DNA of 50,350 bases. It comes from Pelomyxa schiedti (Eukaryota > Protista > Evosea). The notes below the pieces were generated by a model. The model saw only the letters and a program-made list of their open reading frames with translations. It was not told the DNA's origin and ran no database searches. The position numbers and the translations under genes were made by a program. Shown here piece after piece: positions 4,221 through 9,011 of this stretch. Location: positions 1 through 50,350 of the forward strand of contig JAHLWZ010000233.1 in NCBI GenBank assembly GCA_020536535.1, given 5' to 3'. How positions within the stretch are numbered: position 1 is the first letter of the stretch; every line of letters begins with the position of its first letter.

Positions 4221-7200
4221 ATGCAGCGACGCACAACCAACACGGTCACGCCCCCATCGGCTTCGTCAGCCAGCACAACAAATTCATCGTCCACTTCTTC
4301 TTGTCGTAAACCTCCTCCGCCCACGAGTGCCGTCCGTAATGTAAATAACAGCAACAAACCCACGTCTATGACGAAGCCTCGAGCTGTCAAACCACCAACA
4401 AGCTCAACAACAACAACCACATCGTCGACGTCCCATAATTCCCGCGCTGTGGCGACTGCCACCGCCGCGGCGCCGACCGGGAAACCTACCACGTCGACTG
4501 GTGAGTCACGCCCAAAGGGGACTGAGGACACTGTGAGGGTGTTCGTGAGGCTGAGGCCACTGTTGCACGACGAAGGATCAGATCTCGCTTGGTCTGTTGG
4601 TCTCAAGCAAAACGGTGTGTGTATCTTAAATCATTCCTCGTGAGTTGGGGGAATACAATGCGACTTGTATGTCGGCAGGCATACCTAATTATGGGAGCGG
4701 AGAACGTATTTAGCGTTTTTTTTTAATTTTAAGGTGTGGGTATTAAATTGGGTGTTTTACCCAGTCTTAAAATATTTCAGGAAAGGGAGGCTATGTACAA
4801 CAGACAACAGATTTGGCTGCACTGGCTTCAAATTTGCCTACTACCAGTGCTGCAGCAACAGAAGTGGGCAACAAGAGATATGACTTTAATCACGTATTTG
4901 GCCCAAAAGCATCCAACATTGAAGTTTACAATGTAGCTGTACGTCCTGTTGTTAGGTACACATACATTTCTTGCACTAAAACACAACAACACACGATGAC
5001 CAACTCAGATCTTACATACCGCTCTAGAGGATGGTTGGAAGGTTTCAATGGGACTTTCTTTTCTTATGGGCAAACTGCTTCTGGGAAGACGTAATATATA
5101 TATATTTTACTTCGAATTAAAGATTTGTTTTGCCAAGAAAACTCTTGCAGGTATACCATTTTTGGAAACACCACAGAGGGTGTGGAGGGAGTTATTTACA
5201 CCGCCATTGAAGAAATTTTTGCATTTTTTGCTTCTCACTCTCAAGACTCTAAATTTCTTTTATGTGTCTCATTTCTTGAGGTTTCCTCCTCCTCCTCCAC
5301 ACGTGTTCTCTTTTGTTGTTGTTGTTGTTTGTAATATTCAAGGCATTTTACTGACAGGTCTACAATGAAGAGGTGTATGACCTACTTGATTCCTCCGTTA
5401 TCCCCTCTCCACTCCACCTGAGAGAGCGGAACGGAAATTTCTTTGTTGAATCGGTGCAAGAAATATTTGTTTCATCATCTGAAGAAGTCCTGGACTTGCT
5501 TAACCTTGGCAACACACGAAAAGTGATGGGTTCCTCCTATCTTCACAATTCATCCAGCAGGAGCCACACGGTATGCGGTTTTTTACCGCAACTTTAATTA
5601 ACTGACTACATTCTCTCAGATTTTCAGGCTCATCTTGGCACGAGAGGAGCTCTCTAATTCAGCAGCAACAGTTTCAGAGCTCAACCTCGTCGACCTTGCG
5701 GGCAGCGAGTCTCTATGCTACACGCACGGAGATGCACAGCAGCAGGAAACCAAGCACATCAACGTCAGTCTCACTTGTCTGAAGGATGTCATCACAGCCC
5801 TCAGCCGGAAAGAGCAATTTATACCCTATCGCAACAGTTTATTGACCAAGTTATTACAGCATTCTTTGGGGAGAGATTGCCTTACGGCAATGGTAACCCA
5901 CCCACCCACCATTTAAATCATTACAAAATAATTTTCCACTCGCTAAAATTAAAATTACCAAAAGGTATGCTGCATATCTCCATCCTTTTCCAATAGGAAT
6001 TGGAGCAAACGAACTCTACAATTCGGGGAAATAGCCAAGAAAGTAGTTAATATTCCCAAAGTGATCATCCATTGCCTTGGGGGAGGAACGGAGGAAGCTT
6101 ATTTAAAACCTCAAGAAGAAGTTGGTAGACCCAATTACACTTCTGCCACCGAGTCAATTCCAGATTAGATTCTGTCACGGTGAAAATTCGGATGGATAAT
6201 GATAGGCTGACAAGACTCAAGGCCATTAACGAAAATGTTCAAAGCACTCAGCAGAAGGCCACTGAAACTGAATATACTGAGTACACGATTCACACTTGTG
6301 GTGGTGAAGTGAGTTTTGTCAGTTTGATATTTATTTACCATTCCTCAGGTATTTGCTGTTGGATGTGGATCGATATCCTCTCCACTGGCATTAATTCTTC
6401 CAGGTTACCCTGGAGGGTGGGATGATTGGGAGTACATGTTTGCACCCCTTGCTTCCTATGGCTGGCACCCTGTGGGTGTGGGTATGTGAGCATTGAGAAA
6501 ATGTTACAATAACTCCTTCAAAGACATGCCTGGATTTGGAAGGAGCACAGGAACAAGGCAAAACAGTCGCACCGAGTACCATGCACAACCCAATGGGGCA
6601 AATCAAACTGTTCACGATATTTTAGACTTCTTCAAAGTATCACCTACCAGAAAGTGCCTTTTACTCGGGTAAAGCTTTTATTCCACTTGAAAGAATTAAC
6701 TCGAATCTCGGTCATCGATAGGTTTGACTGGGGTGGCGGAATTGCACTCTCCACTGCTCTTTCTCCAAGTGAAGCCAAGCGTATTTGTGCCATAGTTTCT
6801 ATACATCCCTCCTGGACAGAAAATCTTGCTCTCCTGAACCGACTCACTGTGTCCACACAATTACTATGGGTTCCAGTGGAGCAGTTCCATTCCTACACAC
6901 TTGGAAAGAAGTTAGCACGTGCCATTCCAAAATGCACACTTGTAACCCTTGATATTGGCCATTATACTGACGATAAACCATCTGGAATTTATTACTGTAT
7001 TAGCCCTCAGGTATAATGTGGGCTTTCTTTTTTTACACTAAACTGAAAATTCAGATCATTGAAAAGGTAACAAATTGGATACCTGCTCCCTCTGCTCCAA
7101 AGCTTCAAGGTATAATGAGTAACCCCCTTTGCTACTCTAAGCTTGCCCCTGTTTTTATTCTCAACCTGCAACTTAAAAGCTCCAAAGAGAAGTCAAACCT

Positions 7201-9011
7201 CAGGGAACAAGGCGGCAACAACAGACAGCAATCTCCCCTCTACAATCACAACTGCTTCTCCTGAAGCATCTACAACCACCACCACTTCAGAGTCATCTGC
7301 TTCTGGGTCTATGTCTGAACCCCGATCCACGAAGGCACCTGATTCTTCAATGGTTCATCTTGCTCAGCTTATAAGCTGCCGCATATCCGAAAACCGCACC
7401 ACACTACCAACTTCTGTGGGTGTGGCCTCTCGACTGCCCTCAGTGTCCCAACAATCCCCTGCCTACCACTTCACTGTCAGTCCTGCCCCACCTCCTGACT
7501 GCACTACCTTAGCACGCCAGCGATGGGCTGTTAGTAGGTTTGTGGAATTACTCATTTCTGGTCAAATAGAGTCGTTCTATGATGCTTATCGCGGAATATC
7601 TGCACCGTCTGTTTCCCGACCTGAAGCAGTAGGCCTCTTTGGCGCCCTCCCATCCATCACACCACATGTGTCTATTGAGGGTATGTGACCAACACCCGAA
7701 GAGAGACTCGCTAACTCTCTTAGATATGACAAAATGGGGCATTTGGGAAAAAGGCCCTGCCGGCGTAGAAGAACTTCCAAGTTTCACCGATTTTCCACGC
7801 TACCTGAGAGGCAGACAAGTGCTAGTCGTGGCACCTGTTTATGCCCGTGTTGATGCACAAAGTGTAGATAGTCATAGGAACGTAGTTGAAGACTACCTGT
7901 CCTACAAATCAGACTCTCCTGATGTTATGGTCACTCATAGAGCATCAGTGTGTGGTGTCGGGCCAACACACTTTGATGTTCATATTGATATGCCTAGTGG
8001 TTGCGGTAGTGCCACAATCAAAGTACCACATGAGGAAATATTCAGACTCAATGAACCCACCAATTTTGTAGAAAGTGGTGGAGGGGTACTTACCTTTGAG
8101 GATGGGATACGTTGCAGGTGAGTCTATCCTTTTTTCCTTCTACAATCCGCCGTACTAAAAATGTGGCACAGATATACTGACTTTTTAACCAAGGCCAAAC
8201 TTCTGGAGGCGGCATTAGCAATACGTCACCTTGCAAAGCAGCTTGATTTCAGGCAGTGCATTCCGGGGCACCCAAATTACAATTCCAAACATGCAGCTAC
8301 CATGCTCGAAATCCAACTAGCTTGTGTGCGGGAAATCGACCGAGTCATGGACTGTGTACACTTTGTTGCTGAAGGAAAGCTGGACCCCCACAGATACTCC
8401 AAGCTTGATGTTGGGAGACTTGCTTTACATGGTTTGGCTCTATTTAACTTCCCTCCTTCCTCATACCACTTAAGGTCGTGGACACTGTCATACAGTTGCT
8501 AGTGTGATAGCCGCCCTACTGATACCATTTGCCAATCTCATTGGTGTGGAAGTTCGGTTCCGTGCAGGATTCTTCCAAATGACAAACCGGGACATCGACT
8601 CATTTGGTAACATCATGCCCTCTTGGGACGGCAAACCGCGGAACACCGATGACCACACTTGGCTCGAAGTGACATTCATACCCTCTCTCCAATCCTTCGT
8701 GGTAAATCCCCCTCCCAAAAGCATCAAACACTGCGGAGAATCCTCTAATTTCTCACCAGTGTGACCCATCATTCTCTCCGCTTCTACTGACACTTGACGA
8801 GTGCTACTCCCGGTATGGAATGAGGCACCCCTCAGCAGCACTTCAATGCGGATCACGGCCCCCTGCACCTCCACACACTATCACATCCTCAGCAGTTTCT
8901 CTTCCCGCAAGTGATTCCGGTACCGGCTCGAGGCACACGGAGCACGGAGACACCTCACATGCCAAACTCAACCCCATTGACTGGACAACCGATCCAAGAC
9001 TCAAGAGTTGA
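4221..9011 (+). CDS. Kinesin motor - alpha/beta hydrolase - transglutaminase-like domain fusion protein (multi-exon)
   Basis: Kinesin motifs VRVFVRLRP, GFNGTFFSYGQTASGKT (P-loop), SSRSH (switch I), DLAGSE (switch II), FIPYRNSLLTKLLQHSLG. In-frame intron 6125-6168 joins to hydrolase motifs PGYP, DMPGFGRS, GFDWGG, IGHY. Further in-frame splicing gives GRGHCH, HTWLEV, CDPS; stop at 9009-9011. Confidence 0.8.

Follow-up and report, generated by a model that had tools for sequence, protein, structure and literature searches.

A Kinesin Gene of Pelomyxa schiedti with Hydrolase-Fold and Transglutaminase-Like Domains behind the Motor

Introduction

Kinesin tails usually consist of coiled coils and cargo-binding domains. 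Can a kinesin carry enzymes in that place instead? The question is raised by a locus of the anaerobic archamoeba Pelomyxa schiedti, at positions 4221 to 9011 on the plus strand of a 50,350-nucleotide (nt) stretch of contig JAHLWZ010000233.1 (the whole stretch is called the window here). An earlier note, written from the letters alone, had read this locus as a single kinesin gene with two tail domains of enzyme fold, an alpha/beta-hydrolase (ABH) domain and a transglutaminase-like (TGL) domain. We asked whether the locus is one gene, whether its design recurs elsewhere, and what the two folds may do.

We conclude, with a probability of roughly 0.7, that the locus is one gene for a three-part kinesin that belongs to an old, conserved, and uncharacterised family. 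This figure applies mainly to the architecture and the family membership. That Pelomyxa has a single gene here is very likely, whereas far less confidence attaches to an enzymatic role on microtubules. No paper on a kinesin that combines hydrolase and transglutaminase-like domains turned up in literature searches, although such an absence is no proof. In the accessible text and supplements of a 2010 survey of 105 kinesin architectures (PMC2867816), the word "hydrolase" does not occur. The sequences are public and are labelled merely kinesin-like or hypothetical. This kinesin family with an enzyme-fold tail is widely conserved and apparently undescribed.

Results

A single spliced frame

The gene was rebuilt by eye, and its frame and GT-AG borders were checked with a script. 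The model has 17 exons in a single frame, with a spliced coding length of 3804 nt (1267 codons plus the stop), and all 16 introns are of the GT-AG type, with sizes between 40 and 166 nt. Every motif on which the earlier note had built its claim of one frame, running from the motor through the hydrolase to the transglutaminase motifs, was located in the 17-exon frame (Table 1). PGYP begins at 6400, and DMPGFGRS straddles the junction between exons 9 and 10.

RNA evidence came from three single-cell RNA-seq runs of one study, the contigs of which were 99 to 100% identical to parts of the window; a fourth run (X4) carries unspliced DNA of the stretch. Five introns, all in the 3' part of the gene, were confirmed by RNA contigs (7011 to 7054, 7681 to 7723, 8118 to 8171, 8432 to 8474, and 8702 to 8759). 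Among them are the two near 7680 and 8430 that had been singled out for checking, with the joints 7680|7724 and 8431|8475 both seen. The RNA cover was 3' biased: it was absent from 4268 to 6843 in all three runs and rose from 6971 to 9039. The 44-nt intron between motor and neck is within the size range of the RNA-confirmed introns (43 to 58 nt).

Orthologs with the same design

For all similarity searches, the Pelomyxa exons were used singly and unjoined, with the GenBank protein KAH3765112.1 (P0001) and an open reading frame (ORF) from a Mastigella eilhardi transcript (P0002, 1134 aa), the closest relative, as stand-ins. All 17 Pelomyxa exons align to P0002 in order and end to end, the gaps being split codons alone. 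For example, exon 7 matches residues 311 to 362, exon 8 residues 365 to 410, exon 11 residues 504 to 599, exon 14 residues 775 to 911, and exon 16 residues 991 to 1048. With the exon 7 match ending at residue 362 and that of exon 8 beginning at 365, the intron at 6125 to 6168 is supported by orthology. At the junction 6124|6169, Pelomyxa reads "YLKPQEEV|DSVTVKI" and the ortholog reads "YLKPDEEQDSVMVKV". The N-terminal extension of the Pelomyxa protein (4221 to 4520) is absent from the ortholog, which starts 17 residues upstream of the motor.

The search for wider relatives was made with exon 11 alone against 1.84 billion representatives. It gave 65 matches, many of them proteins of 950 to 1280 aa with the matched part at residues 400 to 600. 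Pfam found Kinesin and Abhydrolase_1 on these matches and, on several, also Transglut_core. In a motif scan, about 25 cluster representatives carried both switch II and G[YFW]DWG[GA]; most of these also had a motif of the G-Q-G-[HN]-C type, as well as the P-loop where the N terminus was complete. The named sources are Mastigella eilhardi, Fabomonas tropica, Paratrimastix pyriformis, Ancoracysta twista, Didymoeca costata, Thecamonas trahens, Chromera velia, Namystynia karyoxenos, Polykrikos kofoidii, and Symbiodinium natans, with many metagenomic proteins besides. The family spreads over Amoebozoa, Obazoa, ancyromonads, Metamonada, Discoba, Alveolata, and Provora. The check suggested in the earlier note, a search for the same architecture in other protists, found kinesin, ABH, and TGL together in many distant lineages.

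Full-length single ORFs came from transcripts of Mastigella, Fabomonas, Ancoracysta, Didymoeca, and Namystynia. Since these ORFs derive from assembled transcripts, the fusion is present at the mRNA level in those relatives. The conservation of the design across distant lineages points to an old, conserved kinesin family and to no local accident. The idea of three genes juxtaposed by chance was rejected on account of the same design in transcripts of several distant lineages. Together, the one frame, the exon collinearity with the Mastigella transcript, and the recurrence of the design in distant protists uphold the proposal of a single kinesin gene with two enzyme-fold tail domains.

Some Mastigella Trinity isoforms (P0066, P0068, and P0069) part from the full-length ORF, with breakpoints at residues 600 and 697 and a 22-residue insert at 773/775. 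Residue 600 corresponds to the Pelomyxa exon 11/12 boundary, and 773/775 corresponds to the exon 13/14 boundary. As two breakpoints coincide with Pelomyxa exon boundaries, intron positions are conserved between both Archamoebae; these breakpoints show the pattern expected from introns retained at conserved positions.

Table 1. Features of the three-domain kinesin gene of Pelomyxa schiedti (positions in the window)
Feature	Position	Strand	Basis or details
Coding region, three-domain kinesin	4221 to 9011	+	Frame and GT-AG check; exons abut collinearly on Mastigella ORF P0002
Exons 1 to 9	4221-4614, 4781-4955, 5028-5090, 5151-5280, 5358-5570, 5620-5892, 5965-6124, 6169-6308, 6349-6481	+	
Exons 10 to 17	6524-6668, 6722-7010, 7055-7109, 7180-7680, 7724-8117, 8172-8431, 8475-8701, 8760-9011	+	
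Low-complexity Ser/Thr/Pro-rich N-terminal extension, ~100 codons, from the predicted start codon	4221 to 4520	+	Translation
Kinesin motor domain, exons 1 to 7	4521 to 6060	+	Pfam Kinesin on exons; P-loop (GQTASGK) from 5068, switch I (SSRSH) from 5553, switch II (DLAGSE) from 5692
44-nt GT-AG intron that takes out the in-frame TAG 6166-6168 and links the motor to the neck and ABH domain	6125 to 6168	+	Phase check, ortholog junction
Short charged neck, ~30 residues, sole coiled-coil candidate	6169 to 6260	+	Translation
Capless alpha/beta-hydrolase-fold domain, exons 8 to 12	6261 to 7109	+	Pfam, predicted model, Foldseek
ABH residues	elbow Asp (GFDWGG) 6726-6728; His after strand 6 6804-6806; Glu 6879-6881; His 6888-6890; strand-8 His (IGHY) 6960-6962		
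70-nt GT-AG intron that keeps the frame from ABH domain to tail	7110 to 7179	+	Frame; one RNA contig disagrees, and the GenBank model keeps the intron
Disordered Ser/Thr-rich linker, ~100 codons	7180 to 7480	+	Translation; not conserved in alignments
Helical bundle (end of exon 13) and Tudor/SH3-like beta-barrel (exon 14), ahead of the TGL core	7482 to 8115	+	Alignment A2, ortholog model
TGL core, exons 15 to 17	8172 to 8900	+	Alignment A2, Pfam, fold matches; Cys (GRGHCH) 8486-8488, His (HTWLEV) 8654-8656, Asp (CDPS) 8763-8765

The motor and its short neck

An intact P-loop, switch I, and switch II place the first domain in the kinesin superfamily. Pfam found Kinesin on exons 2, 4, 5, and 6 searched singly, with a best E value of 2e-26; the orthologs' Kinesin E values are 1e-57 to 1e-90. 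Matches to the motor in the PDB and in other databases spread evenly over kinesin-1, -2, -7, and -8 at 37 to 40% identity. In a maximum likelihood tree of 18 family motors and 20 others (the short row P0088 being omitted), the ABH kinesins formed two deep, well-supported groups, both outside kinesin-2 and -7, which were the only outgroups used. One group holds Mastigella, Paratrimastix, and environmental sequences, and the other holds Thecamonas, Namystynia, Symbiodinium, Didymoeca, and Chromera. The spacing between motor and ABH domain is about 45 residues, and the absence of a long coiled-coil stalk, already remarked on in the earlier note, was confirmed.

A capless hydrolase fold with an Asp at the elbow

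Pfam on single exons found no family on the ABH exons or on exons 13 to 15, as the ABH and tail exons are too short to score alone. On P0001, Abhydrolase_1 was found with an E value of 3.3e-12 (47 bits against a cut-off of 25.8), which places the second domain in the ABH fold. A model built from P0001 residues 22 to 246, aligned with 34 relatives, is an eight-strand alpha/beta-hydrolase with a predicted local distance difference test (pLDDT) score of 95.9. In this model, Asp113 lies at the nucleophile elbow, between strand 107-112 and helix 114-122, and the Pelomyxa sequence has Glu164 after strand 7 and His191 after strand 8. There is no cap: strand 6 (132-138) is followed after about 16 residues, with one short helix among them, by strand 7 (155-160). 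At least 500 PDB entries matched the model at an E value of 0.001 or less. The best Foldseek match was the capless hydrolase Ta0194 (3bdi; E value of 4.6e-13, TM of 0.77/0.83).

The domain had been proposed to be an Asp-nucleophile hydrolase of the epoxide-hydrolase/dehalogenase type. The ABH fold and the elbow Asp stood, but the type did not: the domain is capless, carries PGYP, lacks a family-wide strand-8 His, and matches Ta0194 best. An identity as epoxide hydrolase or haloalkane dehalogenase was rejected for want of a cap domain. The oxyanion H-G-x-P motif is not present either, Pelomyxa and Mastigella having P-G-Y-P and most relatives having H-G or H-A. What is conserved family-wide is the elbow Asp, HPSW after strand 6, and D/E-Q-x-H-P after strand 7.

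We also noted stand-alone ABH relatives of about 210 to 240 aa (P0014, P0021, P0040, P0057, and P0063), such as one from Hemimastix. Their elbow residue is Ser (G-[YFW]-S-W-G-G), a similar D-x-x-H motif, in most cases with Pro next to it, comes after strand 7, and the strand-8 His is absent. The ABH domain represents a distinct small subfamily with a possibly shifted catalytic His.

A genome search with an ABH profile found one further Pelomyxa locus with this subfamily (G000:C870; L005:187-3357, minus strand). Its ORF is intronless, encodes 1057 aa, and carries Kinesin, Abhydrolase_6, and YEATS. It is collinear with P0002 over the motor and the ABH domain at 27% identity. No paralog of the tail of the three-domain kinesin was found in the 52-Mb Pelomyxa assembly.

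A tail with an invariant Cys-His-Asp triad

The tail was examined with alignment A2, which holds Mastigella residues 713 to 1090, 20 relatives, and five Pelomyxa exon fragments. All 21 aligned relatives, at 27 to 52% identity, have the Cys, His, and Asp, as do the Pelomyxa exons. The predicted model of the Mastigella tail (pLDDT of 92.1) has helices at residues 4 to 65 and strands at residues 93 to 172. In it, Cys282 opens helix 282-300, His321 opens strand 321-328, and Asp338 follows strand 333-337. The suggested Cys-His-Asp assignment is therefore supported by structure prediction, inasmuch as the conserved residues sit on the expected elements of a confident ortholog model. Tudor/SH3 domains matched the barrel at model residues 84 to 166 (Z of 4.0 to 4.7).

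In a full-library structural search, the best matches to the tail were TG3 (VIA Z of 6.9), TG2 and TglA (6.7), LapG (6.2), and NAT1 and PNGase (5.5), and axonemal proteins were among the weaker ones (Z of 4.3 to 5.3). Matches to transglutaminases, TglA, LapG, NAT, and PNGase ran from Z 6.9 down to 5.0. Foldseek with the whole tail gave no match at an E value of 0.001 or less, and its weak rows were all transglutaminase-fold proteins. All 10 rows from the Atlas were Transglut_core clusters. For Transglut_core itself, exon 16 alone had an E value of 0.03 (15.0 bits) and P0005 had one of 2.7e-4, with P0005 to P0007 scoring 18.9 to 21.6 bits. A PDB sequence search with exons 11 and 16 returned nothing better than E values of 0.4 to 0.8, and a language-model Atlas search with exon 14 returned no usable match. 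A word search with exon 14 found no match either, its length window having shut out full-length kin. On the model, we assign the TGL core as a distant member of the transglutaminase-like superfamily (PF01841). The predicted fold does not reveal the chemistry, be it that of a protease, transamidation, or acyl transfer.

Vasohibin, which the earlier note had cited as using a related fold, was indeed among the tail fold matches, at low Z. Membership in the vasohibin tubulin carboxypeptidases was rejected, as the matches had Z values of 4.5 (6j4s, rank 31) and 4.0 (6wsl, rank 43) and there was no sequence match; the vasohibin partner was not searched for.

Contrary evidence and alternative explanations

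Several observations weigh against a three-part kinesin with two enzyme domains. At the level of the gene, the junction 6124|6169 has no RNA cover in Pelomyxa. RNA contig X1 (298 nt, depth 3.8) joins 7098 to 7177 rather than removing the intron 7110-7179, and either this joint or retention of the intron leads to a stop at TGA 7262-7264, after the ABH domain. At the level of the protein, Transglut_core scored below the Pfam gathering cut-off of 23 bits (15 to 21.6 bits), and all tail fold Z values are below 8. The canonical strand-8 His of the ABH domain is found in Pelomyxa and Mastigella and is missing elsewhere in the family, which makes classical hydrolase chemistry doubtful. Finally, the tail fold and most alignments rest on the Mastigella ortholog as a stand-in for Pelomyxa.

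One alternative is a locus with shorter products, namely, separate kinesin, ABH, and TGL genes, which is how the deposited annotation has it, or a kinesin-ABH protein that ends at 7262-7264, the TGL part being produced on its own (first in-frame ATG near 7312). KAH3765112.1 (297 aa, "kinesin motor domain protein"), matched by exon 11 at 100% identity, covers the ABH piece alone (6192 to 7264): it starts at the internal ATG 6192, keeps the intron 7110-7179, and stops at TGA 7262-7264. The public annotation thus splits the locus. The X1 joint brings the same stop into frame, and two Mastigella Trinity isoforms are truncated, at 603 and 712 aa. However, X1 is a single contig from single-cell cDNA. 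Its joint drops 78 nt and has non-canonical ends (AA..AA). A 9-nt repeat, GCTCCAAAG, occurs at 7094-7102 and 7179-7187. An artefact of the cDNA, aberrant splicing, or a genuine short isoform could each account for the joint. The intron 7110-7179 itself shares the donor GTATAA with the RNA-confirmed intron 7011-7054, and the short Mastigella isoforms diverge exactly at conserved intron positions, as they would with retained introns. Upstream, TAG 6168 and ATG 6192 are separated by 23 nt, which leaves no room for a promoter, and the junction sequence agrees with the orthologs residue for residue. No separate 3' end near 6200 was seen in the RNA contigs of the three runs, in which cover is absent from 4268 to 6843. 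With full-length single ORFs in the transcripts of five relatives besides, we regard shorter products as very improbable and a single gene for the three-part kinesin as the far better reading.

In a second explanation, the locus makes one protein but one or both enzyme domains are pseudoenzymes with cargo-binding, dimerising, or regulatory roles, as in NDRG, Cyk3, and DRC7, so that the motor carries no activity. Some axonemal proteins, DRC7 among them, contain TGL domains that are not known to be active, and axonemal proteins appeared among the weaker tail matches. The missing strand-8 His in most relatives and the change of the oxyanion-loop His to Pro in Pelomyxa and Mastigella also speak for this explanation. 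So does the position of the ABH domain, which occupies the place of the neck and stalk of other kinesins and recurs in the Pelomyxa paralog with a different tail. Against it, a triad kept in every aligned relative at such low identity is hard to explain without catalysis. The ABH domain, too, has its conserved elbow Asp, HPSW, and D/E-Q-x-H-P, and the retention of D-x-x-H-P in the Ser-type stand-alone relatives suggests a site that is shifted but live. We consider inactive domains unlikely and favour a live TGL core.

A third explanation accepts active domains but gives them substrates other than tubulin or microtubule proteins, the motor serving only to position the enzyme, for instance at the periphery of the cell, on membrane cargo, or within the cilium. 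The tail bears no resemblance to the tubulin-tail binding groove of known enzymes, and its vasohibin match ranks below the transglutaminases, LapG, NAT, and PNGase. To our knowledge, all the named hosts are flagellates or have flagellated stages. Conversely, no positive evidence points to any particular substrate, and the short neck holds the ABH domain within a few nanometres of the microtubule surface. This explanation is somewhat more plausible than inactive domains, though still on the unlikely side.

Neighbouring sequences

Upstream of the kinesin gene, Pfam gave no family for a 248-aa ORF at 3279 to 4025 on the plus strand. The transcript contig of this ORF extends to about 4125, some 100 nt ahead of the kinesin ATG, so that the gene spacing is very tight. 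Directly downstream of the kinesin gene, at 9052 to 9400, the RNA contig depth is 10^4 to 10^5, compared with less than 10 over the gene. In the same region, two departures from the window are seen in the DNA contig of run X4: a 7-nt insertion after 9066, and 40 other letters in place of 119 nt at 9133 to 9253. They represent variation of assembly or copy within the RNA gene region.

Discussion

In the mechanism that we propose for the three-part kinesin, the N-terminal position of the motor would suggest walking towards the plus end, or tethering, on microtubules. The TGL core may be a live cysteine enzyme, acting as a protease, transamidase, deamidase, or acyltransferase, and the motor would concentrate it on microtubules or cilia, where its substrates could be tubulin tails or microtubule-bound proteins. 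Action on tubulin is attractive, and we only infer it. The ABH domain might be a second enzyme, esterase-like and with an unusual arrangement of its catalytic site, or it might be a structural or regulatory domain close to the neck.

A bolder version can be drawn: an ancient kinesin family of flagellated protists, maybe as old as the last eukaryotic common ancestor, in which the motor itself writes or erases modifications of tubulin or microtubule-associated proteins through a live cysteine-enzyme tail, the ABH domain marking a wider kinesin-ABH clade with differing protein-modifying tails. Taken as a whole, this version is quite unlikely, less so than shorter products.

If true, a conserved kinesin tail with two enzyme folds, one of them with an invariant triad, would be a new coupling of motility to protein modification. 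Being spread over many supergroups and having left no trace in the accessible parts of the 2010 survey, the family is relevant to the kinesin repertoire of early eukaryotes. Among protists, it also offers a concrete candidate for the unknown enzymes that modify microtubules or cilia. The split gene model deposited for Pelomyxa carries a lesson for annotation.

Among known systems, the best named matches of the motor are kinesin-2 (KIF3B/C) and kinesin-7 (CENP-E and plant KIN-7), which share with it an N-terminal motor with all the nucleotide and switch motifs; the Pelomyxa kinesin differs in having no coiled-coil stalk and a tail made of enzyme folds. For the TGL core, the likeness to the transglutaminase-like superfamily (animal transglutaminases, PNGase, LapG, TglA, and arylamine N-acetyltransferases) lies in a Cys at the N terminus of a helix and a His and an Asp on successive strands, 17 residues apart. 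It differs from them with Z values of at most 6.9 and identities of 9 to 16%, and the helical bundle and Tudor/SH3-like barrel ahead of the core are peculiar to the kinesin family. Vasohibin requires SVBP and has a non-canonical triad. Vasohibin-SVBP resembles the tail in broad fold class and acts on microtubules, but it matches far less well than the transglutaminases do and has no sequence similarity.

The ABH domain shares with epoxide hydrolases and haloalkane dehalogenases an elbow Asp followed by Trp (G-x-D-W-G), and these enzymes are among its fold matches (6fr2 and 8ckp); it has neither their cap, with its substrate-holding residues, nor a strand-8 His across the family. Ta0194 of Thermoplasma acidophilum is similar in its eight strands, its lack of a cap, and a weak sequence match at the elbow. 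In contrast, identity to it is 19%, its elbow has a Ser (by the usual elbow motif) where the kinesin has an Asp, and the kinesin-ABH family has extra conserved His residues (in HPSW and D/E-Q-x-H-P). A further comparison lies within Pelomyxa itself. The second kinesin also has its ABH domain directly after the motor and has the motifs PG[FY]GRS and H-P-x-S-x-G-R in common with the three-domain kinesin, whereas it has an elbow Ser (GSSQG), the motif D-D-L-G-H-P, a YEATS tail, and no introns, compared with an elbow Asp and a TGL tail in the three-domain kinesin. The pair of motor and ABH domain thus appears to be a shared core with interchangeable tails.

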